Made by a program: the position numbers and the translations under genes
Notes under the pieces: model-generated
Databases searched by the model: none
The model's input: the letters and a program-made list of their open reading frames with translations, nothing else
Told to the model about the DNA's origin: nothing
Assembly (NCBI GenBank): GCA_937625935.1
Contig: OW569355.1
Location: forward strand, 1-64,000
Origin: Tetramitus jugosus
Taxonomy: Eukaryota; Protista; Heterolobosea
Reading direction: 5' to 3'
DNA: 64,000 bases
In this document: positions 3,525 to 64,000 of the stretch, piece by piece
Position numbering within the stretch: the stretch's first letter is position 1
How the letters are laid out: the number at the start of each line of letters is the position of its first letter

Positions 3525-3599
3525 GTGTTGATCCAAGAGTGCTTTGCAACAAAAGAGCAGAGGTCTATTTTGGAATACTTCGCTACTTTCATGCGGTTT

Positions 3600-5116: not shown

Positions 5117-5129
5117 CGCGTACCATCAG

Positions 5130-6155: not shown

Positions 6156-6172
6156 CTGCTTTTTTATGTACC

Positions 6173-7572
6173 TTTTTTTTTTTTTTTTTTTTTTAATACA
6201 ACAAATGGTGCTCACGCACCACGTTGCGGAACTTTTATTTTTCTTTTGCGTGAGAGCAGGCTTGCCTGCTCTCAATTGTCTAACATGATGTGGTGCTTGC
6301 CCAGTGGAGTGGCAGGCCTACGCAACAGGATTCATTCTCTTCTTGGAATGTTGTTTTGATCCCTTCTTCAGGGATTCGTTGCGAGGGCCTCCACTACCGT
6401 CTGGAGCACCACTGGTGAGGTCAGATGGCTCTGTAGTCCTAGCCAGTTGGTAGGACCTACGGAGAGCACCTGACTTGATACTGGCCAACCTGGCCGGGAT
6501 CTTGTTGGCAGCAGTGTCACCAACGGTGACACGTGCTGATCGCTTCTTGTGTTCGTTGAGTTGGGGACTCTGTAACTCACAGTCGGGGTTACTGAGATCC
6601 AACTCAACTGGATCTTCTTCGGTGGTTGTGCTTCTTGCACGGTCCACCATGATTGCTCGGGCAGCAATCTCTTTCTTGACTTTCTTGAACACCTCGGAGG
6701 TGTTCAATACTAGCTCGAGGATTGCTCTGTTACGAGCATCCTCATCAATGGTGTTGTTGGTTGGCTCTTGGGTGACCGTAGTTGGAGTGGCGGGATGGGA
6801 CTCCGGCATGATCGACTCCCAGTCATCGGTCGTAGACGGAGTCGAAGGTTCGAATTCGGGGATTCGCTCCGGCGTCCTTGGAGACGGGGATGCGAGGGGA
6901 ATCCGGTTGACGGAAGCCATATCTTTTAACACACTGACTTGGTGGCGCAGGTCGTCCACCACAGCCAGTAGCTCTTGGTACATCTTGGTCAGCCTCTTGC
7001 TGACAGCCTTGACCGGATCACGTGGGCGTGGAAGGAAGCGCTTTGCTTCCACCTCCACTGGCATGGATTGAACGTTTCGAAGCAAAGCTTCGGCATACGT
7101 TTCGGACTCCATCACAACAAAGGCGGTGTCGTGCTTCTTGAGCACGTTCTTGACCTTTGTTGTGCCAAGCATGGCCTTGATGTCGTCCTCCGTCTTACCT
7201 TTGACACCGTGGAGGACGACCTTCTTGGCACAATCTACGTTGTGCTTGAGTGCTGCCTTGCAGCCACTCATCTTCTTGTTGCGGTTGAAGGATTCAACAA
7301 ATGGGTAAATGTTGTCATCAACAACAGTTACCCACGCAACAAACCTCTTGGGGCCCTTCTTGATGACTTGGACCCTGGTGAGCAAATCACCAAAATCCTA
7401 GCCAATCTTCTTGGCCAAGGCAGCCTTGGGAGAGTCATCACACTTTCCAGTGATGATGACCTCCTTGCTGCTTGGCGCAGTTCCTCTTGGTGCTGTGGTC
7501 CACACAGCATAGCGTGGATTCTCATACTCACGAACAACAGGGGTGTGTGTTCGTTTTTTCATCGGCGTTTTT
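6173..7572 (-). mobile_element. Family A non-autonomous ORF1-only retroelement, copy A1 (1.4 kb), upstream of tRNA-Gly
   Basis: Poly(A) tail (T-run from 6173); 15-bp TSD gcttttttatgtacc at 6158-6172 and 7573-7587; near-identical to 52514-53894. Confidence 0.93.
6318..7562 (-). pseudogene. ORF1 of A1 (~414 aa, RRM-like plus coiled coil) with one nonsense codon
   Basis: TAG at 7398-7400 where copy A2 has TTG; KVVLHGV and DTAFVVMESETYAEALL resemble RNP2/RNP1. Confidence 0.8.
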
Positions 7573-7625
7573 GCTTTTTTATGTACCATCAGGAATATTT
7601 TTCCATACTTTCTTAAAAATATTGG

Positions 7626-7696
7626 GCATCTGTAGTGTAGGGGTATCATGCAGCGTTGCCATCGCTGCGACCCGGGTTCGAATCCCGGCAGATGCA
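7626..7696 (+). tRNA. tRNA-Gly (GCC)
   Basis: Acceptor stem GCATCTG/CAGATGC, anticodon arm cagcg-TT-GCC-AT-cgctg, T-arm GGTTCGAATCC. Confidence 0.97.
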
Positions 7697-45870: not shown

Positions 45871-46034
45871 ATAGGTGTTCTCCTAGCATCCGAACTCAAC
45901 ATCTTACCAAATTGAACAGGTCACACTGTTTCATGTTAATAAACATTGTTCGTAATCTGCACCAAAGAATGTGTTCAACATATTATGAGTATGAATGAAC
46001 AAGCATGTTGTTATGGCGCTGGCTGGAGTGCAGC

Positions 46035-46485
46035 TTTTTTTTTTCCATACAACAGTTGTTGCCACTTTATTCTATACCCTACCGTGAGTCATGATTCCGC
46101 TCGGCACCGTTAGGTGACGAGCAGTGTTTCACTCATCTGCGCGACAGAGTTGATATATATCTTGTATAGTGCCTTGATGCACGACCTTTTGATTGAATCA
46201 ATGATTCTCCTTATCTTTTTCTCTGCTTCAACTCTCTTCTTACCAGAGAGCTTCATTTCGTCCAGGAGTTCATCCTTGAAGTCTCCTTCCTTTCCCATCA
46301 GTCCCTCCAGTGTTCCTTCCGGTGTTCGATTTACATTTCGTGGTTGTATCTTTCCACTCTCGTACAAAACATCCTCGAACCATATAGGGGCCTTGACAGA
46401 GTCCGGCAGACTCAACTTGTCCAGCTTCACCTTCAGCTCTTCAACCAACTTTCTTCTTGCAATTCTTGCGAGTTCGCACTCCACG
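46035..46485 (-). mobile_element. Family C non-LTR element, 5'-truncated copy (oldest in the tRNA-Phe stack)
   Basis: Poly(A); near-identical to ~53937-54387; TSD ggctggagtgcagc at 46021-46034, right copy 46486-46497 cut by the next insertion. Confidence 0.92.
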
Positions 46486-46497
46486 GGCTGGAGTGCA

Positions 46498-47283
46498 TTT
46501 TTTTTTTTTCCATACAACATGAGTTGCCTCTTTATTCATTTCACCTTGTTACTGGGAGTGATGCTGCTCTGCACCGGCACGGTGCAGAGTGCTAGGTCAC
46601 TCCCTTGCCCTGTCAAGTCCATGGGGACTGGTAGTTGTTGTGTTGCTCTGCGCCGGCACGGTGCAGAGCATCGTTTCCCTCCACCTCTCCTTAGACCTAA
46701 TGAACAGTTTGTGCAGCTCCTTAACATGCTCTCTCTTGGTGCAGTCGATTACACTCGCAGCCCTTTTTTCTGCGATCTTCTTTTTGCATCCCGTCTTGAT
46801 GAGAGCATTGAGAATGTCCTCCCTTGTCTCTCCTTCCTTCCCCATCAGACCAGCCAAAATATCATGTGAAGACATGGCAGCATTTCTTTTGATCAAGCTA
46901 CCATTACAGTACAAGTAACTGTCGAACCAGACTTCCACCTTTGTGTCTTTTGGCAGCCTTAATTTGTTGAGTCTATCGCTCAATGACATACATATTCTCT
47001 TTCTGACCTCTTGTGCGGATGAACACTCAACTAGGAGATGAATGATTGTATCATCCTCTTCTCCACAACAAGTACACGTCGTGCCACGAAAACCACCATA
47101 TAAACTCTGCATCACTGAAAGAGTATGCAAGGTGCTGATGGTAAAACCAAAGTTCTCTTCTGTCGAGGCCAAAGGGACACTTCAGAAATGTATTCCACCC
47201 ACTCCACTTTGTGAGTTCTGCATCAAGCCACCACGTACTGTTTCTCAAGACCTCCTTCTCTCTTTTATGTCGATGCAAGTTAG
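46498..47283 (-). mobile_element. Family D non-LTR element, 5'-truncated (ORF2 C-terminus with CCHC knuckle)
   Basis: Poly(A); CTCCGEEDDTIIHLLVEC; WWLD..FLKCPFGLDRRELWFYHQ homologous to family C; left TSD acgggctggagtgca 46483-46497. Confidence 0.88.
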
Positions 47284-47424
47284 ACTTTTTTTTTTTTTTT
47301 TTAATACAACCAATGGTTGCGCTGTTTATTCGTTGTTGATTCTCTTTACATGACGTAACTGTTTCGTTTATGACGGCAGAATGCCGTCACTGTTGCATTG
47401 TTTGTTGCTGGTGCTCGCAGAGCA

Positions 47425-50400
47425 TCAGCAACCAGCCATCTCCTTGGAGCTTGTGAAGAGGCGAAGCATCACGTCAATACATCTCCTCTTAGTATTATCC
47501 ACGAACTGTTTCGCTTTCTTCTTGGCGATATCCTTCTTAATTCCATTTTTTTTGAGCCCTTTGGCAACTTGTTTCGCTGCTTGCGATTCCACACCTAACA
47601 TACCTAACATATATTGTTTCCCAGTCTTCCTTTGCTCGTTAGTTGTGCGCCTACCGTTGCACCACTGTTGGTTATCAAACCATATGTCCACACATTGTGA
47701 CTTATGCAGTCCCATTGAGCTCAGCTTCGCAGCAACCTCCTTTGCGAGCAAAATTCTGGCCATCCTTCGGGCATGACGTATCCATATCCTCCACATTATA
47801 GAGGTTCTTCACCACAGCCTTTGTGTGAAGTGTGTGACTTTTAACTTAGGCCACGAACCATTCCAGCTGTCTGCTCACCCTAAAAGGACACCTCATGAAT
47901 GAAAAGTCGGTAACACCTCCCAAACACTCTTTTTGAATCCACCAAATCTTCTCCGTCCCTATTAAATCTCTGTACTGTCTAGTAAATATATTCCAGATCT
48001 GTTTTTTTCCGTAACTTCAAAGTTATCCCTGCACATAAGTATCGGCGGAGCTGCGCCCCTGTGCTCGTGCGTTTCATTGCACTGCAATATTTCTAGATCC
48101 AAGAGAATGTTCTTGTATCGCAGTGCGCTGATTCCGAAGTTGCCATGAACTTTGACTAGCTCACTGTGCTTAATCCACATACCTTCTCTAGTCAGCTCTT
48201 TCCTCAGGCTGATACCCATCTTGAAGAACTTCTTGGCCACATCATTTGGTTGAAACAAAGAGAGGTTGCAACTCAAACAATTGACTTCATCACCAAATGC
48301 AATTGTCAAGTAGTTGTTGTGCATCCGCTCCGCACACCATTTGAGGTAAGTATGCTTGACCACCTCCAACCTATTGATGGACTGAAAGACATTCTCCCTT
48401 TGGAATGTTTGTTGAAGCTTGATCTCCTCAAGCGAGTCCAACATAAGTTTGTGAGCTTCGGTGTCACTCTTTCCTCTCATCATATCCTTGATGAACCAGG
48501 CGGTTCTCACAAGAATTGACTGCTCGATTTTGCGCAGACCAAATCCACCATTTTCACTTGTGATCTGCAACAAATCAGACGGGTACCGCTTCATTGCAAC
48601 AGAACCTTGTTTGATGAGCGCTTTTCCCATCTGGTTAACCTTCATGATCCATCCTTTTGTCCAATGCGTAAATTCACACGCGTAGAGGAACACTGGATGG
48701 ATGCATGTGTTGACGATTCTTGCCACTTGCCTCGGAGTGAGTTTCATGATTCTCAAACGATTGATCACCCTTTTAACCTTTTCTTGCGCCTGCTCCTTTT
48801 GTTTGGTTGTACAGCCATTCAAGTTAGTGAAGAGTCCCAGCGCTCTGAATGTCTTTTCACTGCCATTTGCTCGCACAACAACATTGTTGACCACTATGCT
48901 GTGCTCAGACCTATTCCTACCCATCTTCCGGACATAGAGTTCCAGTTTGTTTGGGTGCATGACCATTGTTTACAGTCCTCTCAATGTCCTCCCTGTTGTT
49001 TGACATTAGGTTGCAGTCATCCACGTACGCAACATTCCAAATGTCCTGCGACATTGCTTCGTATCCCTTAGCAAAACGTGCAGTGTACATTAACACCGTT
49101 TGGTGAACAAGCACATATGTCGTAGGAGACAATGAGTCACCTTGTCTCGTGCCTTTCCCAATTGGGAAGCGCCTTGACAGCTTTCCTGTCATGACTCTGG
49201 CCCAGTTGTCGGTTACCATGTCGTGCACCAAGTTGACAACATGTTATGGGAAACCAAAGAAGGAGTACACCTCCTTAATGGCGTTATGGGGCACCGAATC
49301 GAAGGCCTTTGCGATATCAGTCAGTAGGATGTACAATTGATCATCATTCCTGTTAGCATGATCAATGACCCCTCTCATGATTGACAGCTTTTCTCTGATG
49401 TCCCTCAATTTACGGCCGACTCCCTGTGTGTTTGTGAACAGCGATGCTGCCTCTGCAGCTTTCGACACACGAGCGTTGAGCAGCCGTGTGAAGAGTTTTG
49501 ACAAAGCACTCAACAGACAGATAGGCCTGTAATTCGCTATGTCTTGTGCACTGCCTTTCTTGTAGGCAGGAACAATAGTGCACTCTTTCCACATCACAGG
49601 AAATGATCCACGTTTCAGAACGTTGTTGAAGACTCCTGCCAAAATATCGGCAAACTCCCAGTTGTAGTCCCTGTTTTCCCCCTTCGGCAGTTTCAACATC
49701 TCGTTGTGGATACCATCTGGCCCAGGACACTTTCTGTTCCTTAGCCATTTGATAGCATCACGGACCTCTTCCGTAGTGATGTCAGTGAACTCCTTGCTTA
49801 TCGCACCCTGTGCACAGGGAGCGCTAATATGTTTGAGGTAAGACATGTCCGCGGTCTGCTTCGAAAATGCATCCTCGAAGTAGCAAGCGGACGCTTCCCC
49901 TACTCTCTCCCTATCACTGTGGACCATACCACCGACCTGAACTGTGCTGAGCCTGACTCGATTGGCTTTCTTTGCCGATGATGATCAATTGTACATCCTA
50001 CTGACTGATATCGCAAAGGCCTTCGATTCGGTGCCCCATAACGCCATTAAGGAGGTGTACTCCTTCTTTGGTTTCCCATAACATGTTGTCAACTTGGTGC
50101 ACGACATGGTAACCGACAACTGGGCCAGAGTCATGACAGGAAAGCTGTCAAGGCGCTTCCCAATTGGGAAAGGCACGAGACAAGGTGACTCATTGTCTCC
50201 TACCGGAGAAGAACCTTGTTGGGTTGACGAACTCCGAGGTTCTGGTGACCCATTCCCATTGCCTGAACCTTTTGTTGCTGCTCCTTGTTCTTTCATCGTG
50301 CAACTTCTGACTGACAATACCCAACGCTTCCCAGACTGACTCTCTTGTGAGTTGTGGTAGACCTACATAGTGGCTGACTGTCCTATGGGTCCTTTCCTCA

Positions 50401-51383
50401 GTTTCGCCACACACCAGGAACCTCAATAACAACTCTCGAGATTTTAGCAGCCTTCTTACACGTCTATTGTTGCCCCATGACTTTTTCACTCCTTCCCTTC
50501 CAAAGATCTCAGTAGCCTTTGTGGTTAGGACCTTAGTTATAGTAACACATTGTTCACCCGTGTCGTCCATCCTTTCTACTCGGTGACTTGTCAAATCATC
50601 AAGCACTTGTGTTGCATAGGTTAACCACCGTTTGTCGTTCTTATTCTTCGGGAATAGGAAGTTTGGTCTTTCTACCTCCTCTTCTTCCTGATGTTCAATT
50701 TCCACTGATACTCGAGTTGGTATGTGGTCACTTATTGCGCCATTACTAACTAAAGGCTCGACGTTGCTTATCAAGGTCAGCGCAGCTCTGTTCGCCCATG
50801 TAGAATCAATGCGGGAGGACATTGTTCTATTATAGTAGGTGTGAAACCTATGTACGCCCAGGGCTTGGTTGATATCCTGCATGTTGCAGCTGCTGACCAT
50901 GCTCTTCAGTGAGTTAGTGTTTGGGTCCTTCCTCTTCGATGTCCTATCTTCCTCTGCCACTACCGCATTATGGTCACCACCAAATAAAACTTTGCCAGCA
51001 ACGGATACTCTGCTAAGGATCAGGCTGATCCTCTCATAATGCTCTTTGTTTGTTTTGTGTGGACCGTAGTGATTCCCTATTGTGAGTGTTACGTTGCCAC
51101 ATATCACTGTGACTACTTGTAAGCGGTCATCGCTGTGAACAATCCCATGACTTGATACCTTCCTTGTGTTGATAATTGTTGCAACATACTTGCTGGGGAA
51201 TTCGCAGAGGAGTGTGCAGCCTATAGCTGCTAGTTGTTTCGTCAGCTTTGTCAGCTGATCCTGGTGTAGAATTCTTGTTTCTTGCAGCAAGAGAATGTCA
51301 ACATTCCCTTGCTTCAACATATTAATAATGTCAACGGCCTTACCAGGCAGACCGTTGACATTGTACCAGACAATTCCTAACAT
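47425..51383 (-). pseudogene. Family B ORF2: APE endonuclease plus reverse transcriptase (disrupted)
   Basis: YNVNGL, LLQET, GGDHN, SRID, SDH (APE); KCPGPDG, YRPICLL, DIAKAFDSV, GTRQGDSLSP, AYVDD (RT). Confidence 0.92.
49978..50203 (+). repeat. 226-bp inverted duplication of 49122-49347 inserted in family B ORF2
   Basis: Reverse-complement copy; ORFs 49149-49340(+) and 49985-50317(-) share an identical peptide. Confidence 0.93.
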
Positions 51384-52485
51384 ATTATTGAGTCACCTCT
51401 TGGAGCTCTAGTTAAAGAGGTATCCCTCTGTCGTATCGTTGGTAGGCGAGCAGGGGTATTGATCAATTGTCTTTTCCTCTCATTCATCTCATCCAGTTGA
51501 GAGCTTGCGCATCTTTTACCCCTCTTAACTGGAGTGACCTGATTGCTTGTCAGACATATTTCTGCCAATTCGTGGAAAGCAGATCTGCTCGTTAGTGCGC
51601 TGGTGCTCTTGCTGCGGCTACGCTGGGGAGATAGTGCTGGCTCGTCTTGTGTCACATCATTGCTCTGAGGTTGCAATGTGGACTCCCAGTTGCTGGCTTC
51701 ATCTTCCTGTTGTGGGTGAGTATCCTCACTGCGAATTGCTTCTGCAGTTCGTCTAACAGGTGCTCTCCTGGTCTTTCTCCTGGTCTCTCTTTGATCATCG
51801 CTTGCTGACTCTCTATGTCCTTGAGTCATTTTCTTCATCACTTGCTCCATTAAGGCAACCTTTCTGCTCAGTGATTCAACCATCAGGATTAACTCCTTTC
51901 TAGTACTCTCTATCCTCTTGTTAACAGTGATATGCGGTTCCTCTCTGCGTTCCAGGTATTTGCTTACCTTCATTGTCAGTGTGGCATCTCCAACTACCGC
52001 TTGAGCGTATGTTTGTGACTTCATTGTCACAAACGCTGTATTGTTTGTCAACACCACTTGCTGTACTTTGTCAGCACCGACCAGTGCTGAAACCTCTTCC
52101 TCTGTTTTGCCTTCTACACCGTACATGACAAGCTTTTTGTCATTATCGAGCCCTCTCTTGATAAATGCTTTGGCATTTTTCACACACTTCCTGGCATTGA
52201 AATGAGCCACAAACTCATAAATGTCATCCTTCTTGATGTTGAGCCATGCAATGAACTCATTCTTCTCCCATTTGATTACCTGTACTCTTGTCACCCACGG
52301 TGCGCACTTGCTTGCAACGTGTCTCGCTACCTCCAGTGCAGACCCTGTTGGTCGTTGCCCTTGATGACTACTTCACGGCGGTTGACTGAACCACCTTTTG
52401 GAAGTGTTGTCCACACTGCATGTCTGTTTTTGACATACTCACGCACCTCCATTGGAGTGGATGGAATGTTTCCGTTTGTTTGCAT
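51377..52485 (-). pseudogene. Family B ORF1 (frameshift near 52350)
   Basis: VREYVKNRHAVWTT, RVQVIK, NTAFVTM; overlaps the ORF2 start by 7 nt. Confidence 0.8.
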
Positions 52486-52513
52486 TGGTTTTTTTTTGAT
52501 GAAAGTTAGACGG

Positions 52514-53894
52514 TTTTTTTTTTTTTTTTTAATACAACAAATGGTGCTCATGCACCACGTTGCGGAACTTTTATTTTTCTTTTGTGTGAGAGCAGGCTTG
52601 CCTGCTCTCAATTGCCTAACATGATGTGGTGCTTGCCCAGTGGAGTGGCAGGCCTACGCAACAGGATTCATTCTCTTCTTGGAATGTTGTTTTGATCCCT
52701 TCTTCAGGGATTCGTTGCGAGGGCCTCCACTACCATCTGGAGCACCACTGGTGAGGTCAGATGGCTCCGTAGTCCTAGCCAGTTGGTAGGACCTACGGAG
52801 AGCACCTGATGTGATACTGGCCAACCTGGCCGGGATCTTGTTGGCAGCAGTGTCACCAACGGTGACACGTGCTGATCGCTTCTTGTGTTCGTTGAGTTGG
52901 GGACTCTGTAACTCACAGTCGGGGTTACTTAGATCCAACTCAACTGGATCTTCTTCGGTGGTTGTGCTTCTTGCACGGTCCACCATGATTGCTCGGGCAG
53001 CAATCTCTTTCTTGACTTTCTTGAACACCTCGGAGGTGTTCAATACTAGCTCGAGGATTGCTCTGTTACGAGCATCCTCATCAATGGTGTTGTTGGTTGG
53101 CTCTTGGGTGACCGTAGTTGGAGTGGCGGGATGGGATTCCGGCATGATCGGTCGTAGATGGAGTCGAAGGTTCGAATTCGGAGATTCGCTCCGGCGTCCT
53201 TGGAGACGGGGGCGCGAGGGGAATCCGGTTGACGGAAGCCATATCTTTTAACACACTGACTTGGTGGCGCAGGTCGTCCACCACAGCCAGTAGCTCTTGG
53301 TACATCTTGGTCAGCCTCTTGCTGACAGCCTTGACCGGATCACGTGGGCGTGGAAGGAAGCGCTTTGCTTCCACCTCCACTGGCATGGATTGAACGTTCC
53401 GAAGCAAAGCTTCTGCATACGTTTCGGACTCCATCACAACAAAGGCGGTGTCATGCTTCTTGAGCACGTTCTTGACCTTTGTTGTGCCAAGCATGGCCTT
53501 GATGTCGTCCTCCGTCTTTCCTTTGACACCGTGGAGGACGACCTTCTTGGCACAATCTATGTTGTGTTTGAGTGCTGCCTTGCAGCCACTCATCTTCTTG
53601 TTGCGGTTGAAGGATTCAACAAATGGGTAAATGTTGTCATCAACAACAGTTACCCACGCAACAAACCTCTTGGGGCCCTTCTTGATGACTTGGACCCTGG
53701 TGAGCAAATCACCAAAATCCAAGCCAATCTTCTTGGCCAAGGCAGCCTTGGGAGAGTCATCACACTTTCCAGTGATGATGACCTCCTTGCTGCTTGGTGC
53801 AGTTCCTCTTGGTGCTGTGGTCCACACAGCATAGCGTGGATTCTCATACTCACGAACAACAGGGGTGTGTGTTCGTTTTTTCATCGGCGTTTTT
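52514..53894 (-). mobile_element. Family A non-autonomous ORF1-only retroelement, copy A2
   Basis: Poly(A); 15-bp TSD atgaaagttagacgg at 52499-52513 and 53895-53909; ORF1 (53884-52654) frameshifted by a 14-nt deletion near 53150. Confidence 0.93.
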
Positions 53895-55286
53895 ATGAAA
53901 GTTAGACGGGCTGGAGTGCAGCTTTTTTTTTTTTTTTTTTTTTTTTCCATACAACATTTGTTGCCACTTTATTCTATACCCTACTGTGAGTCATGATTCC
54001 GCTCGGCACCGTTAGGTGACGAGCAGTGTTTCACTCCTCTGCGCGACAGAGTTAATATATATCTTGTATAGTGCCTTGATGCACGACCTTTTGATTGAAT
54101 CAATGATTCTCCTTATCTTTTTCTCTGCTTCAACTCTCTTCTTACCAGAGAGCTTCATTTCGTCCAGGAGTTCATCCTTGAAGTCTCCTTCCTTTCCCAT
54201 CAGTCCCTCCAGTGTTCCTTCAGGTGTTCGATTTACATTTCGTGGTTGTATCTTTCCACTCTCGTACAGAACATCCTCGAACCATATAGGGGCCTTGACA
54301 GAGTCCGGCAGACTCAACTTGTCCAGCTTCACCTTCAACTCTTCAACCAACTTGCTTCTTGCAATTCTTGCGAGTTCGCACTCCACGAGTAGATGCACAA
54401 TGGTTTCTGGAGCTTTGCAACAATGTGCGCAAGTGACATCGAACAGGGGATTGTACAACTGTCGAATGACAGTCCGTGTGTGGAGAGTTCCACTTCTCAC
54501 CTGATGATAGAACCAAAGTTCCTTTCTTTCCAGACCAAATGGGCACTTGAGAAAGTTATTCCTCTCCTTGTCTTGCTGCAATGCAGCTTCCAACCACCAT
54601 CCCGCATGTTTTGAGATAGTATCACTCCTACTCATTGAGAAGTGATCAGTCAGTTCCTTCCTGATGTTATCCCCAACAAGCGCCCTACCACTGACAGACA
54701 CTGAGACCTTTTGCTGCCCGGTTCTCTGAGCAAACCGCTTTTCATCGCACGGTTTACCAAGCAGTTCCAAGTAAGCACGAATCCTCATGTACTTTTTTTG
54801 GCCAATACCTGACATCTTAAACCTTGACTTCGCTACTTTGTAGGGCATTGTCATGATACCATCATCATCAAAAAGCTGATGGTTTTTAACAACCCCACAG
54901 CGCCGGAGTAGCTTTGAATCGCCCGTGGGAAGGCACCAACCAATGCTGCACCTCTCACATTCGTGACAGTCGTCAGTAGAGACGGTGATTCCAGAGCTAT
55001 GGAGTAGTTTGGCGCACCAAACAAGATATGTGTGTTTCACCTCACGGAGGCGGATATTGGATTTAAAGATGCTCGTTCGAATGAGCGTTTGTGATTGCTT
55101 GACATCATCAAGCGTATCCAATAATAGCGTCCGTGCTTCTGTATCTCTCTTTCCTAACAGCATTCCCGCAATGAATGCTGTGACCTTTGAGGTTAGACTC
55201 TCCTTGAAATTGTTCAGGTCTATTCCTCCCTGATCTCTCACTACTGCTAACAACTCGGAAGGGAACCTCTTAAGGGCAGATGATCC

Positions 55287-57645
55287 TGTCCCGCCTTATA
55301 TCTCAAGGCAAGGCAACCTTGGAAATTATTTCAAGGCAAGGACTTTGCCTTACAACAGTTGTGACACCTGACATACAGAAACATATCAGAACAATCATAA
55401 GAAGAATTGAACATTAAGCAGATTTATTTGATACAACTTTCCTCCTCTTCCTTCCTTTTCTGGATATAATTGGAGTGGCAAGACATTCTTCTTCTTCTTC
55501 TTCTTCTTCAACTCGCTTTCGCTTTGTTGAAGTTGTATGATCAGATCTGGTAGCAGAAGCATCAGTTATAGATGGAAAACCCATCTCAGCAACAGCAGGG
55601 ACATCAGCAGGACATGAATGATCAACTGGATCAATATCCATACTATGAATCATCACTGGAGCAGTCCCAGCAGTTCTGGAAGTCCCAATTGACATCAAAG
55701 CCAAGAATATCATTGCTGCAGTTGGATCAGGTAGCATACCAGTAGTAATAGAGGGTGAACCAGGCAGAGGTGCATTAATAGAGAGAGGACCAGGTAGAGA
55801 TGCAGGGACAGAAGGACGTGTTCCAGTGACAACAGAACCAGATAGAGTGCTACTGCCAATGGGCTGTGATCCAGATGATTCCTGTACTGCACCCAATGCA
55901 TTATCAAGAATTCTATCCAACTGATCACTCAATTCAACAGTAGAATCCTCCAACGGATCAACATAATCATTCAAATAATCATCATCATTGTACACTGGTT
56001 CTGATGGAGGTTCTAGATCTGGAGCCACTTCTGTGAACTTGTCATCTCCATAAAAGAATGGCTTCATGTCACTGGTAGAGATGTAGTAAGATGTTGTGGT
56101 GTGTGGCTTCTCACTCTTAGCAAAACCTCCAGTTTCCATCCATGCTACCGTCCACTTGTCCAACAGCTTACCATGAACAATTTGTTGAGTCACAAGCTTT
56201 GCCTTTCTGCCCCAGACAAATCTCTCAGTACTTCTGTACTTCTTAGGTACTCTGATCAGAACAGTTGCATCTCTATGATACTTTGCAACTCTCTTGCCAC
56301 TAATCTTACGAGCTGCATCGTTCTCTCCTCTTTTGATTATTCTGTTTCTGATCTGGTTGATGTTGAAGAGTCTTAACGCTGCTTTCGCTTCTGAAAGATC
56401 TGATTCATGCAGGGCAAAGCAAGCATCCCAGGCCTGCATTGGTGTCATGCCAATTGTAGAGTGATGGTTGTTGTTGTATGTGTTAATGACCTGGCTGTGA
56501 AGCAAAGTCCATTCCTGCATATCCTTCTCCAACAAAATAGAATTCATCAAGTCTTTGATCGTCTTGTTTGGACGTTCAATCACTCCCTGACACCTTGGAG
56601 TGTAAGCAGGACCTTCCTTCTTGATGAAACCATACATGGCACAAGTATCTGCAATTGACTGTGCAATGAACTCTCCACCATTATCTGATCTGAGATACAT
56701 AATGTTCTTTGCTTGTGTCACATCTTGCAATATTTGCAGACCAATACCTTCAAATGTCTCAATAAGAAACGATTTGACATGAATAGCCTGCTTGCTGCTG
56801 ATGCGTTTGCTCCAGATCCTCTTTGTAAGGTGATCAATCATATTGACCATACCGATATCACGTCCGACCTTTGGCATGAAGGTCAGATCAATGTAGAGAT
56901 GATGTAGAGGATAATCTGCAACAACTGTTCTGATTGGTTCTACTGTTCTCTTGGCACCCTTACGTGCACATATTTCACACGATCTGGTATACTTTTCGAT
57001 TGCAGATTGCATACCAGGCCACAAGACAAGATCCCTGTGGAATTGAGCTAATAGAGCCTTTGTCCCCATATGATTAGCATGGTGAACCTCTCTCAAAAGC
57101 TTCTCACGATCTTTCACTCGTGGAATATAATGCCATTCGTGCTTCGTAGATTTCTTAGATGTCAGAATAGATTCATCAAATACATTGCTGTCTCGAGCCT
57201 TCTTCTTCGCTTCTTCTGTGACACCACTTTTGAAAACAGGAGTCTCTTCAGTGATGTCTACTCTATAGAATAATTTCCCTTCTTCAAACTTAACACGTCC
57301 TCCAATCTTCTTGTTGAATTCTGTCTGTTGCTGCTCACTGACATTTGACCAATCGATATTGTCATAAGCATAGTAGTAGTTTGTTACTTTGCTCTCAGCC
57401 ATGCACCTACGAACCATTGCTCTCTTGTTCTTTGCTTTTGAATCTACTGTTTGATAACTCATGCTGTGTTGTACGATATCTCTGCTGTTGTTGATCTTGG
57501 TGCTTTTGTTTGTATTATCGTAACGGTATTGTCTTGCGTTGCGGAATCACTGAGTTTATTGAAGTTCATTGAACTGGTTGAAGGTGGAGCCTCTGCCTTG
57601 AGATATTTGAAGGCAGTAATTGCCTTGACATTGTAAGGCACGACA
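55287..57645 (-). mobile_element. Ginger2/TDD-like DNA transposon (2359 bp)
   Basis: TGT...ACA ends; imperfect TIR TGTCCCGCCTTATA / TGTCGTGCCTTACA; 5-bp TSD GATCC (55282-55286, 57646-57650); removing it restores KHGSSALKRFP in the host ORF2. Confidence 0.9.
55414..57462 (-). CDS. Retroviral/Gypsy-type integrase (HHCC plus DD35E) transposase, intact, 682 aa
   Basis: HHANH..CEIC zinc finger; YIDLTF, SDNGGEF, then 35 residues to the E of GVIERPN; basic NLS at the C-terminus; no gag, RT or LTRs. Confidence 0.92.
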   Translation of the reverse strand: MSYQTVDSKAKNKRAMVRRCMAESKVTNYYYAYDNIDWSNVSEQQQTEFNKKIGGRVKFEEGKLFYRVDITEETPVFKSGVTEEAKKKARDSNVFDESILTSKKSTKHEWHYIPRVKDREKLLREVHHANHMGTKALLAQFHRDLVLWPGMQSAIEKYTRSCEICARKGAKRTVEPIRTVVADYPLHHLYIDLTFMPKVGRDIGMVNMIDHLTKRIWSKRISSKQAIHVKSFLIETFEGIGLQILQDVTQAKNIMYLRSDNGGEFIAQSIADTCAMYGFIKKEGPAYTPRCQGVIERPNKTIKDLMNSILLEKDMQEWTLLHSQVINTYNNNHHSTIGMTPMQAWDACFALHESDLSEAKAALRLFNINQIRNRIIKRGENDAARKISGKRVAKYHRDATVLIRVPKKYRSTERFVWGRKAKLVTQQIVHGKLLDKWTVAWMETGGFAKSEKPHTTTSYYISTSDMKPFFYGDDKFTEVAPDLEPPSEPVYNDDDYLNDYVDPLEDSTVELSDQLDRILDNALGAVQESSGSQPIGSSTLSGSVVTGTRPSVPASLPGPLSINAPLPGSPSITTGMLPDPTAAMIFLALMSIGTSRTAGTAPVMIHSMDIDPVDHSCPADVPAVAEMGFPSITDASATRSDHTTSTKRKRVEEEEEEEECLATPIISRKGRKRRKVVSNKSA

Positions 57646-60213
57646 GATCCATGCTTGACGGCCTTACGGCCGATTCCTTCGATCTCATTGAGCCATTTCT
57701 TTGGCCAGTGGGTAAATTCCGATGCATAAAGGAACACTGGGTGCACGCATGTGTTAACGATCCGTGCTGCTTGAGCAGGACTCAACTTGAGGAGCCTGGC
57801 TCGGTTCAGAATTTTCAGGACCTTCAATTTTGCCTGTTTCTTTTGTGCTTCGGTATCACCATTGAGATTGGTGAACAATCCGAGAGCTCTGAAAACAGAG
57901 TCTTTGTTCTTAGCCGTCACTAGTTTGTCAGAGACCCTAATCACGGGCAATCCATCCTCCACTTTTCTAGCAAAGAACTCCAATTTGTCAGGATGCATAC
58001 TCAGGCCCAAGCACTTGAGCACCTTGTGCATAACATTAGCTGTCTCCTCTATGTCTTCAAGACTTCCACTGAATAGGTTACAATCATCAACATATGCCAC
58101 ATTCCAGATCCTTTGTGACATGGCCTGATACCCCTTTGCTCTCATTCCAGCATAAAGCAACACCAATTGGTGCACTATCACATAAGTAGTTGGTGACAAG
58201 GAGTCACCCTGTCTAGTGCCCCTGTCTATGAAGATTCTTCGAGACCTAACTTGAGTTCCAATCGTTGCCTCATTTTCCTCGAGCATACTCTGAATGAGAG
58301 AGATGATACTCTCTGGGAAATTGAAGAAGCGGTACGCAGCGGTGATCGCGTTATGTGGTACACTATCGAAAGCTTTGGAGATATCAGTTAGGAGGACAAA
58401 CAGCTGTTCATCCTTTCTGTTCGCGTGGTCGATCACGCCTCTAATGATTGATAGCTTCTCCCGGATGTCCCTCATTTTGCGACCACCACCCTGTGTGTTA
58501 CTGAACACCCCTGCTTTCTCGGCTGCCTCTGCAACTCTCTGATTGAGCAGTCTTGTGAAGACCTTCGACAGACTGCTCAATAGACAAATAGGTCGGTAGT
58601 TGGCAATGATCGAAGGACAACCCTTCTTGTAGGCAGGGACGATTATGCACTTCTTCCAGCTGCTTGGAAAAACGCCGGCTTTAACTATGTTATTGAAAAG
58701 TGTCGCCAGGACCTCCGCGAAATCGTATCTATAGTCCCTTTTCTTCGTGTGTTGGAGCTTCAGCATCTCGTTGTACACTCTATCCACACCCGGCGCTTTA
58801 CCGTTCCTTAACCACTTCACTGACTGTAGTATCTCTTCAGATTTGAACATTGGAAACCATTGCTCCATGTTCCTAGCTTTGAATGTCATTTCGTCCAGGA
58901 AATTCAAATTAGCAAATTCATGTTCGAACACTTCCTCGAAGTACTTCGCTGCATGCTCGGCTACTCTCACCTGGTCAGTAACTATGGTGTCATGGAGTTT
59001 GAAACTTTTAAACCTTATCCTCATTGACCTTTTGCCGGTGGCAGCATTGAAGAAAAACCTAGGATCCACAAACTCAGTTGTCCTAGCCTTGTATAGCCAC
59101 TTTCCAAATCTTTTGTTAGCCCTCCTAGCTCTTTCTCCACTTTCGCCAGAGCGGTAAGGATGCCAAATTGACTGCTTTCTTCACCGTACGCATGACAAAT
59201 CCTCATAACTTTGCTTGTCAACATCGACCCCTGTTTGGAGATTTTCTCCACAAGAGCTTCCCTCTCTTTCATCCATCTTCTCACCCTTCTGTTGTCAATC
59301 CCTTTGGTCATCACTTTGATCTCAGGGAAGATTTTTGCACCATCTGTGATAGCACTAGTGATTTGCTCACACTGTTCATCAATCGAGAGATCTGCAAATT
59401 TAATCCTCTCGAGACTGTTAATGACAGACTGCGAGTAGGTAGTCCAAGACAGGTGATCCCTCTTTGGGAACCTTGGCTTCGGCTCTTGTGTTATCTCAGT
59501 ACCATCCTTTATCCACCGGAGCTTCACCATCGTAGGGATATGGTCACTGTACACACCATTCTTTGTGTATGGGAGAATGTCTTTCACTACTTCCGTAGCA
59601 GATGGATTGACCCAAACAGAGTCTATCCTCGAGGAATATTGGTTCCTGAAAAAGGTATGAAAGTCCTCCTTGTTTGCAACCGAGTTGGCACTCAGTAGCT
59701 GCAGCCCCTCAATCAATGCTCTAAAATGAGCACTGTTTACATCCAACTTACCCGTGCTTCGATCAGTGCTCATCGTCACGGTGTTATGATCGCCTCCAAG
59801 GATTAGCTTTCCTCTGTATGCTAACCCTCTCAGAACTTCATTAGTTGCCACATAGTGGTGTCCTCCAATTGCTTCTTTATGCGGACCATAGTGGTTAACC
59901 AACTTAACACTAAGTTCTTCACTCGCAACCTCGATCACTTGCACTCTATCACTGGAGAAAAGCACCCTATATTCTTGAACGCTAGCTCGGCGTACTATTG
60001 TCATAACTCTATCTACTACATCATTGCAGATCAATATACACCCCACCGTCTCAAGTTGTCTGGAAAAAGAGGTTTTGAAGCCCTCATTCCTGCAACTTGC
60101 TTCCTGCAGCATTAGTACATCGACTTCCGGGCTTGACTCTAAAAAGGCTACAACACCACTTCTTTTGTTTTTGAGTCCCCTGATGTTGTATCATACGACG
60201 TTTAAGGTCGTAC

Positions 60214-61239
60214 TCATTGTTGGGACAATTCGTTCTCGTCATTGGTCTCAACAATGGGTTGAGTCCTATTGACATACATTGTCCCGCCAGGAGAGCCGGT
60301 TAAAATTACCTTACTCTGAGTCTGAACATCCTCCAACTCATTGGCTACTCTTTTCGTCCCTCTTCTGCCACCGCTTCTTGCAGTAAAGTCGGTCAACTTA
60401 GTTTGACCTTTATCTTTTCCCCCAGCAGTACGTCTCCCCTTAGTTTGTGCAACCGGGGTACTCAGCACTTGTTCCCCACTCTCTGAGTTCAAAGCCTCGA
60501 TATCAACCATTTCCGATACTGGATCTGGAAACAATTTCTCCTTTCTCTCGAAGCCACTCATAAGAGTGCTTACTCTCTGTCTCATTTTCATCATTTCGGC
60601 CTTAAGTGCACGAATTTCTTCTACACTTCTCGCATAGTGATCCATTACATTGTTCAGCTCACTCTGTAGCTGAGACACATTTCTCTTCAATTGCTCGATA
60701 GGATCTTGAGTATGGTGAACGTACTTTCTCGTTGTTGTATTGTTCATCGGAGTTATTCCCAGCAATGCCTCAGCGAAGCTAGGTCCTTTTGTGGATACTA
60801 TCGCTGAATTGCCTCTTAGTTCGACTCCGCATACATTGTCACGTCCAGCCCATTTTAAAATCTCCTCAACACTGGACTTACCGGCTCCCACCAGCACCAC
60901 ATCATGTGTGGCCCTCATACGGCTGTTCGGAACAGCTCGCGCACCATTCAACATATTTCTGCAGTTGAACCATTCAATGAATTCCCACACTTTGTCATTC
61001 GTTGGGACTATCCACGCTCTAAAATACTCGCCCTTTCTGCTCACTTGCACTCTCTCCACTCTTTCACTGCAACCATGTACAATTCTGTTGACCAAAGCTT
61101 CATTGGTAACATTGTTGCATTTGCCAGAAACCACAACTTCCTTTCTCTTGACTGCTGCATCCTTGCTGACTTTTGTCCATAAGACAAAATCCTTTCTGCG
61201 TATAACTACCGCCTGTACTGACGGTCCTTGTGTAGACAT
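60214..61239 (-). CDS. Family C ORF1 (341 aa, RRM-like plus coiled coil), intact
   Basis: FVLWT..KEVVVSGKC, RVQVSRKG, DPIEQLKR homologous to A/B/E ORF1; its stop overlaps the ORF2 ATG (ATGA). Confidence 0.85.
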   Translation of the reverse strand: MSTQGPSVQAVVIRRKDFVLWTKVSKDAAVKRKEVVVSGKCNNVTNEALVNRIVHGCSERVERVQVSRKGEYFRAWIVPTNDKVWEFIEWFNCRNMLNGARAVPNSRMRATHDVVLVGAGKSSVEEILKWAGRDNVCGVELRGNSAIVSTKGPSFAEALLGITPMNNTTTRKYVHHTQDPIEQLKRNVSQLQSELNNVMDHYARSVEEIRALKAEMMKMRQRVSTLMSGFERKEKLFPDPVSEMVDIEALNSESGEQVLSTPVAQTKGRRTAGGKDKGQTKLTDFTARSGGRRGTKRVANELEDVQTQSKVILTGSPGGTMYVNRTQPIVETNDENELSQQ

Positions 61240-61295
61240 GTGTTCGCGTTTTTGGGCTGGAGTGCAGCGGAAAAAATCGGAAATTTAATATATGA

Positions 61296-61368
61296 GCCGA
61301 AATAGCTCAGTTGGGAGAGCGTGAGACTGAAGATCTTAAGGTCGCGTGTTCGATCCACGCTTTCGGCA
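61296..61368 (+). tRNA. tRNA-Phe (GAA)
   Basis: GCCGAAA/TTTCGGC acceptor stem, TAGCTCAGTTGGGAGAGC, CT-GAA-GA anticodon loop, GTTCGATC, TTTT terminator. Confidence 0.97.
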
Positions 61369-61642
61369 CACTTTTGATTCGTTGTTTCGGTTTTGCGCTC
61401 GAACATTGTCACCTTCAGAACGTTGTTGGAATCCTCTTTGAGATGACTCAAAATGCTACAAATAATTGAAGGAACTCCATTCTTGGTCAACAACTCTGTA
61501 AACTGAGGAACCCAATTCCGAACTCCAAAATGCTTTGTACCATCACAGAGTTACCCCTTAACATGGAAGACAATTCCATCACGGTACCTTTCTTATTATA
61601 GACCACCGTCAGATTGACTAAAAATTCCACCACCCGAATCTC

Positions 61643-61755
61643 CCTTGAAAAGGTATTGAGTGCCGAGCCGTTGGGATCACTTTTCTTCAAGGTTTTGAAG
61701 AGGTCTTGTCCCTCCAACTTGAGTTCGTTTTTCCTGATAGCATATCTCATGCAGG
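61643..61755. repeat. Degenerate dispersed repeat (copy of 3600-3710)
   Basis: Near-identical match. Confidence 0.85.
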
Positions 61756-61789
61756 CCAAAGATATGCGCATACACCCAAAGCATACATC

Positions 61790-62000
61790 AGATGAATTGT
61801 GCTTTTGTCCATACAAAAATAAGAAGGGGAGGAAACTTGGATGGAGGAACAGTCTGTTCAACGACCTCCATGGGAGTGTGAGGGTCATAGTTGAACAGAC
61901 CATAGGTAGGGTAAAGACAATTAACATTTTCAAGACCGAGCGGCGCAGCGGCGAAGCAAGAATAGTCGAATTTGCCAGTTGGCAACAAACAATAAAATAG
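61790..62000 (+). pseudogene. Fragment of a PIF/Harbinger- or ISL2EU-type (DDE_Tnp_4) transposase
   Basis: PYK...FNDLHGSVRVIVEQTIGRVK..NIF matches the FN..H...RxxVExxIGRxK motif. Confidence 0.6.
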
Positions 62001-62262
62001 AGCTTGTGTCGCCATAAACTCCCTCTGAAAACATTCTTGAGAATTTTGCAAACTGCTGTAGTTTGGAGATGGCTGGTTTTTTCAGTTCGGGATGGAAAAT
62101 GTACAAGTCGAATATATACAAAGAGCTCCATCGAATGTTGAAGAAGGAGCAAGGTCTTATGATCACAGAAGTTGGAGTTGAAAGACTTTAACAATTTGTG
62201 GTGTCTGATGGTTGATTCTGTAGATCTACAAGTTAATTTAACTGTGTGCAAGGCAAAAGGTC

Positions 62263-64000
62263 ATTTGTGAAGAGGTGACGCATCACCTCCACAAATCTCC
62301 TCTTGGTGTTGTCCACAAACCGCTTAGCTTTCAGCTTGGCTACCTCCTTCTTGATTCCACTCTTCTTGAGCCCTTGGGCCTCTTGCTTAACAGCTTGAGT
62401 TTCTACCCCTAACATTCCGATCAAATAGTCTTTGCCTGTCTTTCTCTGCTTGTTCATTGCTCGTTTTCCATTGCATCATTGCTGGTTATCAAACCAAATA
62501 TCAACACATTGCGACTTATGCAGACCCATAGAGCTTAACCTTTTTGAGACCTCCTTTGAGAGCAAAATCCTGGCCATTCGAGCAACTGGACAGTTCACAA
62601 GGCAATGCAAGACCGTCTCTTGCTCAAAATTGCACTTGGGACACGCCGTGTCCATATCTTCCACCCCGTAGAGATGCTTCACCACAGCTTTTGTGTGAAG
62701 TGTTTGGCTTTTGACTTGAGCAATGAACCATTCAAGCTTCCTATCAACCCTAAAGGGGCATTTCATAAAGGAGAAGTCTGTTGCACCTCCCAAACATGCC
62801 TTCTGAATCCACCACAACTTCTCCCGACCGATCAGATCTCGATACTGCCGAGTGAAAGCATGCCATATCTGCTTTTTTTCAACCACTTCAAAATTGTCCT
62901 TGTACATCAGTATTGGTAGGGTTGCAGTAGAACGATCGTGTGTGTCGTTGCATTGTAGGAGTTCAAGGTCCATGAGAATGTATCCATATCTCTTCGCACT
63001 GATGCCAAATTTACCGTGCGCTTTGACAAGCTCGCCATGCTTGACCCATTTACCATTTCTTGTCAGCTGCTCCTTCAAGCTGACACCAATCTTAAAAAAC
63101 TTCTTGACCACATCGTTTGGCTGCGACATGGCAAGGTTACAGCTCAAACAATTGACCTCATCTCCATATGAGACAGTCAAATTGTTGTTGTGCATGCGCT
63201 CCGCACACCACTTGAGGTATGTGTGTCTGACAAGCTCTAGCCTGTTGTTGGACTGAAAGACATTCTCCCTTTGGAATGTTTGCAGAAGCTTGATCTCCTC
63301 AAGCGAGTCCAACATTAGCTTGTGAGCCTCGTTGTCATTCTTTCCTCTCAGCATGTCCTTAACGAACCATGCAGTTCTTACTAGAATGGACTCCTCAATC
63401 TTTCGTAGTCCAAACCCACCGTTGTCACACGAAACCTGCAGCAGATCGGATGGGTATCGCTTCATTGCTACTGATCCTTGTTTTATGAGCGCTTTGCCCA
63501 TCTGATTGACTCTATTGATCCACGCTTTAGTCCAGTGAGTGAATTCACAGGCGTAAAGGAACACCGGGTGGATGCAGGTGTTAATGATTCTAGCCACTTG
63601 TCTCGCTGTGAGTCTCATGATGCCGAGACGGTTCACTACTCTCTTCACCTTTTCGAGTGCCTGCTCCTTTTGTCTTGTCGTACAACCGTTCAGGCTCGTG
63701 AAGAGTCCTAACGCCCTGAAAGTTTTTTCACTTCCATTTGCAGGCACAACAACATTATTAACCGTTATGTTGTGTACTGAGCTACTTCTGCCCATCTTCC
63801 TGACATAGAGTTCCAATTTGTTTGGGTGCATGACCATCCTGAGCATGCTCAACACTTCATTCATTTTGTTAGCGGTCTTCTCAATGGCTTCTCTGTTATT
63901 GGACATTAGGTTGCAGTCATCCACGTACGCTACATTCCAAATGTCTTGCGACATTGCCTCGTAGCCCTTGGCAAAACCAGCGGTGTACATCAGTACCGTT
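62263..64000 (-). mobile_element. Family B-related non-LTR element, partial (RT C-half plus CCHC); 3' end truncated, continues past the window
   Basis: AYVDD, FRALG, CPKC..HCLVNC; colinear with ~47450-49100; TGA at 62476 where family B has Trp. Confidence 0.9.

Follow-up and report, generated by a model that had tools for sequence, protein, structure and literature searches.

Several families of APE-type non-LTR retrotransposons (LINEs) in Tetramitus jugosus very probably integrate by target-primed reverse transcription at positions that are set by Pol III genes and not by DNA sequence. This appears to be a second Pol III-targeting LINE system, located in a different eukaryotic supergroup but with the same offset and orientation as the first one, and apparently with recent activity. 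To our knowledge, LINE targeting of Pol III genes by position has so far been documented in dictyostelid amoebae only, and we found no description in the literature of a tRNA-targeting LINE system in this host. The principle of insertion upstream of tRNA genes itself is already known from TRE5 and NLTR-B.

Stacks of LINEs upstream of two tRNA genes

The window analysed here corresponds to the first 64,000 nucleotides of contig OW569355.1. At positions 46022-61268, five non-LTR retrotransposon copies with poly(A) tails, belonging to four families, are stacked head to tail. All are antisense to the tRNA-Phe(GAA) gene that the stack faces (61296-61369, + strand, detected by ARAGORN), and only target-site duplications of 11-16 bp separate them. 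The original prediction of five such elements in a single orientation, with their 5' ends toward tRNA-Phe, was borne out by Pfam matches on the minus strand (AP endonuclease, RVT_1 and zf-RVT), by alignments and by the T runs (reversed poly(A)) of the + strand. These runs start at 46035, 46498, 47286, 52514 and 53923, with another at 6173 in the tRNA-Gly stack, and a 3' end motif common to the copies follows each run in reverse complement.

Copy C (53947-61253, minus strand), whose 5' end maps to -43 relative to tRNA-Phe, is a full-length LINE of the autonomous type with Pfam matches to Exo_endo_phos_2, RVT_1 and zf-RVT. It is composed of a 5' UTR of 14 nt, an ORF1 (60214-61239), an ORF2 in pieces (APE, 59021-60112; RT, 57636-59069; C-terminal zinc-finger part, 54012-55253) and a poly(A) tail (53923-53946). 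Alignment to the intact 1283-aa ORF2 of a relative (L033) showed that copy C is broken by a frameshift near 59021-59069 and by a foreign insertion of 2.35 kb (55287-57635, minus strand), absent from L033 and not part of the LINE. The single ORF of this insertion (55414-57462) encodes H2C2 and rve integrase domains (Pfam), and about 10 or more related loci are present genome-wide. The next copy outward, copy A (52531-53893, minus strand; poly(A) 52514-52530), is a non-autonomous, ORF1-only element of 1.36 kb with one frameshift, flanked on both sides by atgaaagttagacgg (52499-52513 and 53894-53908). It shares 97.5% identity with the A copy upstream of tRNA-Gly; an intact family A ORF1 of 419 aa is found in L003.

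Copy B (47303-52497, minus strand; poly(A) 47286-47302) is a degenerate full-length LINE of a separate family, 67% identical to C, in which ORF1 (51377-52294), APE (50190-51383), RT pieces (47962-49927) and a small inverted piece (49977-50204) can be recognized; the repeats on its two sides (47273-47285 and 52499-52511) are identical except at one base. Copy D (46510-47272, minus strand; poly(A) 46498-46509) represents a third ORF2 family, of which 5' truncation has left the 3' part: its tblastn matches are limited to the ORF2 C-terminus, and it matches the other copies at the protein level but not at the nucleotide level. The stack ends with a 5'-truncated C fragment (46045-46486, minus strand; poly(A) 46035-46044) made up of the last 441 nt of the family. 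It shares 98.2% identity with copy C at the 3' end of the latter and lies between two occurrences of gctggagtgca(gc), at 46022-46034 and 46487-46497.

On the tRNA side of copy C, its 15-bp target-site duplication gggctggagtgcagc (61254-61268) lies 27 nt from tRNA +1; an identical 15-mer is present on the other side of the element (53908-53922). Repeats also lie between copies A and C (53894-53922), B and A (16 nt, 52498-52513), D and B (13 nt, 47273-47285), and the C fragment and D (11 nt, 46487-46497), as well as at the distal edge of the stack (13 nt, 46022-46034). The spacers had been predicted to be duplicated pieces of the ~30 bp upstream of the tRNA gene; they are indeed duplicated, but serial target-site duplications are more likely than a single ~30-bp source. 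The 15-mer atgaaagttagacgg could be taken for original upstream DNA of tRNA-Phe. It is absent from the distal flank of the stack, so that it more likely entered at the 5' junction of copy D; one repeat (atgaaagttagac..) may derive from this junction and not from the original tRNA flank. The same nick was used three times at tRNA-Phe, and the order of insertion would be, from the oldest, C fragment, D, B, A and C.

The same arrangement had been noted at tRNA-Gly(GCC) (7626-7696, + strand, ARAGORN), and a second stack is indeed present upstream of this gene. An A-family copy (6195-7572, minus strand; poly(A) 6173-6194) is flanked by the 15-bp duplication gcttttttatgtacc (6158-6172 and 7573-7587), with 38 nt between the duplication and tRNA +1. 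The older members of this stack (4140-6157, minus strand) are an A copy truncated at its 3' end (about 4140-5115) and a frameshifted E-type ORF1-only copy (about 5116-6157), which carries the 5' end motif of its family at 6141-6154. At the other end of the window, the 3' part of a further B-like LINE (62254-64000, minus strand, 77% identical to B), whose RT runs on to C12:64893, probably belongs to the next stack. In a tblastn search of the window with all element proteins, matches were confined to 4109-7571, 46113-61272 and 62254-63996. The block at 7.7-46 kb, which consists almost entirely of ORFs, is thus free of elements, as anticipated, and no match was found in the subtelomere (770-4100) or in the other intergenic DNA of the window.

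Element proteins, host and possible origin

The elements are APE-type LINEs, with a reverse transcriptase and an N-terminal AP-like endonuclease encoded in one ORF. They exhibit the hallmarks of this class: a poly(A) tail, frequent and variable 5' truncation, target-site duplications of 11-17 bp and no terminal repeats. In intact copies, ORF2p (1274-1283 aa) has an APE-RT-CCHC organization. The Pfam matches of the elements include RVT_1 (E = 2.7e-27) and Exo_endo_phos (E = 1.3e-9 in copy B and 5e-5 in L044). Among PDB chains, the RT scores higher with R2 proteins (80 bits) than with human L1 ORF2p (41 bits), a ranking by score and not a phylogeny. A HMMER search of ORF2 against 1.84 billion proteins produced matches of at most 31% identity, besides a few closer fragments that we infer to be own or kin copies. 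The named distant matches are to arthropod, fish and algal proteins and, at 25% identity, to one Planoprotostelium protein. No dictyostelid protein was present among the non-self matches looked up, and cluster look-ups of 25 proteins yielded no LINE clade names.

The ORF1 sequence has no match in Pfam or PDB. Its structural model, confident over residues 11-180 (pLDDT about 65-90), retrieved tandem-RRM proteins with Foldseek at probability 1.0, and ORF1p is predicted to have two RRM-like domains in its N-terminal part and a coiled coil after them. Of all the families, the ORF1-only ones (A and E-type) have the highest copy numbers (at least 119 matches to ORF1 versus about 82 to the RT), and they have the last 8-15 nt before the poly(A) in common with the autonomous families. 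The 5' UTR is only 14-25 nt long: in copy C, 14 nt separate the ORF1 ATG from the 5' end, and the spacing is similarly short in A, B and E. With almost no 5' UTR, the elements may need the upstream region of the tRNA gene for their own transcription.

The host is a heterolobosean (Discoba), a member of another supergroup than the dictyostelids. The best named relative of its importin-beta is that of Naegleria fowleri (48% identity), and no amoebozoan importin-beta occurs among the best 120 matches. These matches rule out a dictyostelid host, and with it the case, raised in the original prediction, of an RT nested within TRE5 in such a host.

Could the elements nevertheless be true relatives of TRE5, by deep ancestry or horizontal transfer, with a Pol III targeting that was inherited and not reinvented? 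The ~50 bp distance, the orientation, the ORF1 plus APE-RT-zinc-finger plan and the existence of ORF1-only derivatives resembling TRE5-A.2 all fit this idea. We nonetheless consider it unlikely, given the discoban host, the low identity and taxonomic scatter of the HMMER matches, and a 5' UTR that leaves no room for the modules of TRE5-A, i.e., an A-module promoter of about 200 bp and a B module of 290 bp, accompanied by a C module (Dictyostelium, PMC3159450). Moreover, no TRE-like elements turned up even in Amoebozoa other than dictyostelids (PMC5006619). The authors of that work, who found nothing similar elsewhere, considered the origin of dictyostelid Pol III targeting unknown. Alternatively, Pol III-directed integration could have evolved independently in discoban LINEs unrelated to TRE5, converging on the 50-bp offset and orientation; the tandem-RRM ORF1p would then be the TFIIIB adaptor, and the landing site may supply the promoter. 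We put forward this composite scenario tentatively, as having somewhat less than an even chance. The original description, an 'independent or deeply diverged' Pol III safe-harbour system, is on the sequences compared the right wording, as it does not decide between the two.

Genome-wide position, strand and mode of integration

Insertion upstream of Pol III genes at a specific distance and orientation, predicted from the window, holds throughout the genome. We sampled 26 nuclear tRNA loci, limited to high-scoring Lys, Ile and Arg genes. Element coding sequence is present within 1.5 kb upstream at 14 of them; every proximal copy is antisense, and 43-73 bp separate its near end from the tRNA. 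Almost no element sequence lies downstream of the 26 genes, where no TRE3-like family was seen. In the 11 cases in which 5' junctions were mapped, they fall between -43 and -58 (median -52), all head-to-head, as in TRE5-type integration (~50 bp upstream, 5' end facing the tRNA). Six of six 5'-truncated ORF2 copies with a tRNA gene in reach are head-to-head as well; the truncated end is 45-62 bp from the tRNA in five, and the sixth (L046) gives no distance, as its ORF2 alignment extends over the start of the tRNA. An E-type copy also lies head-to-head 54 bp upstream of the 5S gene at C13:105984, so at least one 5S gene is hit.

Exhaustive pattern counts identified 37 family A 5' ends in the genome. 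A B box is located 92-122 nt beyond 20 of these, with tRNA starts visible in the matches, while 11 others adjoin a short spacer and at least 10 T, which is the poly(A) of the next stack member; the remaining six fit neither pattern. For the ORF1-only E-type family, 27 of 53 5' ends stand in front of a B box, and reversed-pattern controls gave zero for both families. Copies thus lie mostly at tRNA genes or in stacks there, contrary to the possibility that they would be mostly unlinked to Pol III genes. A search with a single ORF1 protein also detected one metagenome contig carrying a stack junction, with no tRNA on the contig. Many copies have intact ORFs and the A copies are 97-99% identical, indicating recent activity.

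The target-site duplications at nine sites have no common sequence, which argues for targeting by position. An endonuclease that reads a DNA sequence, for instance a TATA-like box, in front of Pol III genes, in the manner of R1 or Tx1-type elements, could be suggested by A/T-rich motifs (e.g., ctaaaaatag) that precede many tRNA genes, but the duplicated targets, like the bases at the nick, vary from each examined site to the next, and the nicks of later insertions fall within the 5' end of an earlier element, where the distance from the tRNA is the same but the DNA is unrelated, making this explanation very improbable. Random insertion with survival only near tRNA genes, for which the strong selection against genic insertions in a compact, gene-dense genome might speak, is scarcely credible, since selection cannot produce a 15-bp-wide window, a constant strand or the triple use of the very same nick at tRNA-Phe, young near-identical copies are already all at tRNA genes, and the other intergenic DNA and the subtelomere are empty.

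Under position-directed integration, the junctions show that a nick 27-42 bp upstream of tRNA +1, in the strand bearing the sense sequence of the tRNA, primes cDNA synthesis, and that a second nick occurs 13-17 bp further out. The 5' end of every copy, full-length or truncated, is therefore located at about -43 to -58, with the element directed away from the tRNA, and repeated insertions push the older copies outward, making the stack a chronological record. By analogy with the proposal for TRE5-A ORF1p, the ribonucleoprotein would dock on DNA-bound TFIIIB/TFIIIC, and this docking would set both distance and strand. The ORF2p of autonomous families might mobilize the ORF1-only families in trans via the common 3' end. 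With the T. jugosus system, it becomes possible to test independently which features of the TFIIIB/TFIIIC-DNA complex a LINE particle can read; the system is also a natural comparison for engineered site-directed LINE or target-primed insertion at safe harbours. For annotation, tRNA targeting accounts for most LINE sequence in this compact genome, and tRNA-gene stacks can be read as dated insertion layers.

Comparison with known systems

The LTR retrotransposons Ty3 and Ty1 of yeast and DGLT-A of Dictyostelium also use Pol III complexes as landing marks, a safe harbour in compact genomes, Ty3 and DGLT-A inserting from a few to about 15 bp upstream and Ty1 in a nucleosomal window. These elements have LTRs and rely on an integrase, whereas target-primed reverse transcription operates here. 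R1, R2 and the Tx1 group (Dewa, Mutsu) recognize one conserved target, usually inside an RNA gene; insertion outside the gene into targets that differ by site excludes the present elements from this sequence-specific class. The HAL1 elements of mammals are ORF1-only LINE derivatives copied by the ORF2p of autonomous relatives. The short elements described here similarly retain ORF1 and the 3' end but, unlike HAL1, outnumber the autonomous families and keep their Pol III position specificity. An ORF1p of the L1 type (Transposase_22) can be set aside, as there is no Pfam match and the order of coiled coil, RRM and CTD differs from that predicted by our model.

Pp_NLTR-B of Polysphondylium pallidum, a non-TRE LINE, was reportedly shown by Spaller et al. 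in 2016 to have TRE5-like integration ~50 bp upstream of tRNA genes, and provides a precedent for convergent evolution of this preference. NLTR-B has an RNase H domain after the RT, whereas Pfam detects only APE, RVT_1 and zf-RVT, and no RNase H, in two intact ORF2s of T. jugosus, which sets these elements apart from the NLTR-A/B class of dictyostelid RNase H LINEs.

The closest parallel in behaviour is with TRE5-A/B/C and the other dictyostelid TRE5-like elements, which are APE-type non-LTR retrotransposons inserted ~50 bp upstream of tRNA genes, the 5' ends of element and tRNA facing each other, and which have two ORFs and ORF1-only non-autonomous derivatives (TRE5-A.2). For TRE5-A, the fixed orientation, the dependence on the B box, the binding of ORF1p to TFIIIB, the ORF1-only derivative and an essential 3' UTR have been documented (PMC3159450); here, the 3' end is common to the families. 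More than half of the tRNA genes are occupied in both cases, with 61% in D. discoideum (PMC5006619) and 14 of the 26 sampled loci in T. jugosus. The present elements differ from TRE5 in their heterolobosean host, the lack of a detectable close sequence relationship, the absence of TRE5-type A/B promoter modules and the predicted tandem RRMs and coiled coil of ORF1p. They also differ in that several co-existing families use one site, which leads to stacks of up to five copies.

Arrangement of the tRNA-Phe and tRNA-Gly stacks

The + strand of the window carries two tRNA genes, tRNA-Gly (7626-7696) and tRNA-Phe (61296-61369). In the region preceding tRNA-Phe, five stretches of 10-24 T are found on this strand, and a common 3' end in reverse complement (...GTTGTATT or ...GTTGTATGG) follows each of them. 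All long ORFs of this region are located on the minus strand, where Pfam detected AP endonuclease, RVT_1 and zf-RVT domains. Taken together, these features identify the stack members as non-LTR retrotransposons (LINEs) with poly(A) tails, inserted antisense to tRNA-Phe with their 5' ends towards this gene.

From the outside inwards, the stack starts with a 13-nt repeat (46022-46034), followed by the C fragment, a 5'-truncated copy of family C (46045-46486), an 11-nt repeat (46487-46497), D (46510-47272), a 13-nt repeat (47273-47285), B (47303-52497), a 16-nt repeat (52498-52513), A (52531-53893), two adjoining repeats (53894-53922), C (53947-61253) and a 15-nt repeat (61254-61268) separated from tRNA-Phe by a 27-nt spacer. 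Perfect 15-bp duplications flank C, and duplications are also found on either side of A (15 bp), B (13 bp, one mismatch) and the C fragment (11-13 bp). Sequence identity is 98% between the C fragment and C, and 67% between the RTs of B and C; D matches the other families at the protein level only. The mapped junctions and these identities bear out the original prediction of five copies from four families, in one orientation and with their 5' ends facing tRNA-Phe.

The simplest history of this locus is a series of five consecutive hits in a single window of about 30 bp, by the C fragment, D, B, A and then C, in which every new hit would push the older copies outwards. This order agrees with the decay of the copies: the outer ones are fragments or full of stops, and C has retained an open ORF1. 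The ORF2 of C contains one frameshift and a foreign insertion of 2.35 kb (55287-57635, minus strand), which encodes a single ORF of 682 aa with Integrase_H2C2 and rve domains and presents subterminal inverted ATATCTCAAGGCA and an imperfect target duplication of 13-15 bp (57636-57650 versus ~55273-55286). This insertion may be a Ginger/TDD-like DNA transposon; at least 10 related loci are present in the genome, several close to contig ends and one again adjoining a LINE. In the degenerate copy B, a small RT-coding piece is inverted (49977-50204, +), indicating an internal rearrangement.

The tRNA-Gly stack has the same design, as had been predicted: an A copy (6195-7572) with a 15-bp duplication lies 38 nt from the gene, and further out are a copy of the E-type and an older fragment of A. 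Element-derived coding sequence is otherwise restricted in the window to a B-like copy at 62254-64000 that runs off the window end, confirming that the gene block between the two stacks is free of elements. The 880 bp separating tRNA-Phe from this B-like copy include, just downstream of the tRNA gene, the relic of a transposase of the PIF/Harbinger type (DDE_Tnp_4; 61614-62000, +; Pfam E 9.5e-7). At the other end of the window, a terminal (CCCAAA)n telomere occupies positions 1-770, with degenerate variants in the first 100 nt. A short interstitial telomere-like stretch is located about 1 kb further inside (1757-1780), and the subtelomere (770-4100) is devoid of LINEs.

Element families and their proteins

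Intact relatives elsewhere in the genome encode an ORF1 of 340-435 aa and a single ORF2 of 1274-1283 aa, composed of an APE domain (~1-230), an RT domain (~535-775) and a C-terminal CCHC motif (zf-RVT); no RNase H was found in the intact ORF2. The A and E-type elements, which are distantly related to each other, are 1.0-1.4 kb long and have ORF1 as their sole coding content. The last nucleotides are common to A and B, on the one hand, and to D and C, on the other. These 3' ends shared with autonomous families suggest that ORF2p may recognise the 3' end and mobilise the ORF1-only families in trans. The 5' ends of all families carry A(5-9)CGC-like modules (e.g., 61240-61253, 7550-7572 and 6141-6157), doubled in the E-type (..AAAACGCAGAAAAAAACGG..), and the ATG of ORF1 is located ~14-25 nt from the 5' end in all of them. 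Considering this very short 5' UTR, one may speculate that the region upstream of the tRNA provides the elements with promoter function.

ORF1 has no match in Pfam, nor by sequence in the PDB. Its AlphaFold model, confident over residues 11-180 (pLDDT ~65-90), displays two beta-alpha-beta-beta-alpha-beta units and, after them, a long helix, and Foldseek retrieved tandem-RRM proteins with its maximal probability score. On the basis of this model, ORF1p is most likely a multimeric RNA-binding protein.

Genome-wide association with Pol III genes

We searched the assembly of 26.35 Mb in 56 contigs, in which the window lies on contig 12. Two contigs (C54 and C56) with identical dense tRNA coordinates are probably duplicate entries of the mitochondrial genome. 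Of 26 nuclear tRNA loci sampled together with 1.5 kb on either side, element coding sequence lies upstream of the tRNA in 14. The proximal copies are all antisense, with their near end 43-73 bp from the tRNA, and the downstream flanks contain almost no element sequence. The single sense-strand match faces another, divergent tRNA gene. The 11 mapped 5' junctions fall between -43 and -58 relative to the tRNA +1 (median -52). Judging from the duplications, the priming nick is made upstream of +1 at a distance of 27-42 bp, and the second nick lies a further 13-17 bp out. The duplicated target sequences have no common motif. These copies exhibit the signatures of target-primed reverse transcription, and their insertion is specific for position and strand without a target motif, one site being re-used serially. 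The activity is recent, as indicated by many intact ORFs and copies that are 97-99% identical (97.5% for the two full A copies).

The converse, element-centred test consisted of exhaustive genome pattern searches with family 5' ends, using reversed patterns as controls. For family A, the 14-nt 5' end gave 37 matches, against 0 for the reversed patterns. In 20 of them, a B box lies 92-122 nt further on, and the matched sequences show recognisable tRNA 5' ends of many isotypes; 11 others are followed within 10-40 nt by at least 10 T, corresponding to the poly(A) of the adjacent element in the stack, and 6 fit neither pattern. Most copies are linked to tRNA genes or to their stacks, in line with the original prediction; the chance rate of a B-box match was estimated at ~2% (6-mer with one R, 31 gap positions). 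The search with the E-type 5' end gave 53 matches, 27 of which precede a B box (controls, 0). A tRNA gene is present in 6 of 30 RT-centred loci, on the 5' side and head-to-head with a 5'-truncated ORF2 copy in all six. The truncated end lies 45-62 bp from the tRNA in five of them, from which alone the distance was taken, since the ORF2 alignment overruns the tRNA start in the sixth. The fixed distance belongs to the 5' junction and not to the element's own sequence. Distant stacks were assessed by coordinates and pattern matches only. Upstream of a tRNA-Arg gene on contig 3 (194338), an antisense LINE with a truncated 5' end is separated from the 37 nt preceding the gene by a 39-nt A-rich run (1425-1463 of the tRNA-oriented locus L026), which has the wrong polarity for the tail of that LINE.

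The 5S rRNA genes (at least 47 scored) are scattered singly over the chromosomes and not arrayed. At one locus at least (C13:105917-106103), the 5S gene is preceded, 54 bp upstream, by a head-to-head E-type copy, and another 5S gene is adjoined by a truncated ORF2 copy. Since 5S genes are also targeted, it is apparently the Pol III complex, and not the tRNA as such, that serves as the landing mark. We infer that the element ribonucleoprotein docks on TFIIIB/TFIIIC, whichever element protein makes the contact with these factors. The same kind of stack junction is present in a metagenome contig (soil or groundwater) encoding an A ORF1 with 97% identity.

Host, origin and relation to dictyostelid elements

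Relatives of the importin-beta gene in the window reach 54-85% identity. Among the matches with a species name, Naegleria fowleri ranks first (48%), followed by plants and fungi (~40%), and the top 120 matches include no amoebozoan; a dictyostelid host can thus be rejected. The genome note for T. jugosus CCAP 1588/3C (26.3 Mb, 52 chromosomes, 57 contigs, N50 0.5 Mb) is silent on telomeres, tRNA genes and transposons, a 2026 preprint with a standard repeat annotation of this species does not mention tRNA, and we found no report of tRNA-linked retrotransposons of heteroloboseans or Naegleria in the literature. The tRNA-gene- and 5S-gene-directed LINE system of this heterolobosean is real and well supported, and was apparently undescribed.

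In Dictyostelium, tRNA genes are the target of TRE5-A, which integrates ~50 bp in front of them and has its 5' end turned towards the gene. It requires a functional B box, TFIIIB subunits are bound in vitro by its ORF1p, its 3' UTR is indispensable and an ORF1-only derivative exists (PMC3159450). TRE-like elements were restricted to dictyostelids, with none found in Physarum, Acanthamoeba and Protostelium, and the same preference for tRNA upstream regions also evolved in NLTR-B, a LINE unrelated to them (Spaller et al., PMC5006619). At the sequence level, the T. jugosus ORF2 lacks close relatives: the best match of a word-indexed search covered 29% of its length at 27% identity, and HMMER over 1.84 billion representatives retrieved a few matches or fragments at 36-95% identity, presumably own or kin copies, the remainder being generic LINE RTs at no more than 31% identity. 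The distant matches that we looked up come from arthropods, one fish, an alga and one Planoprotostelium protein (25%). Among solved structures, R2 RTs outscore human L1 ORF2p. We consider an origin independent of TRE5 probable, and shared descent of the two systems unlikely. The T. jugosus elements resemble TRE5-A in offset, orientation, two-ORF plan, ORF1-only derivatives and level of tRNA-gene occupancy, but differ from it by a 5' UTR of 14-25 nt and by the architecture of ORF1. Systems of this kind were already known from dictyostelids; what is new is the lineage and the supergroup of the host, along with several features.
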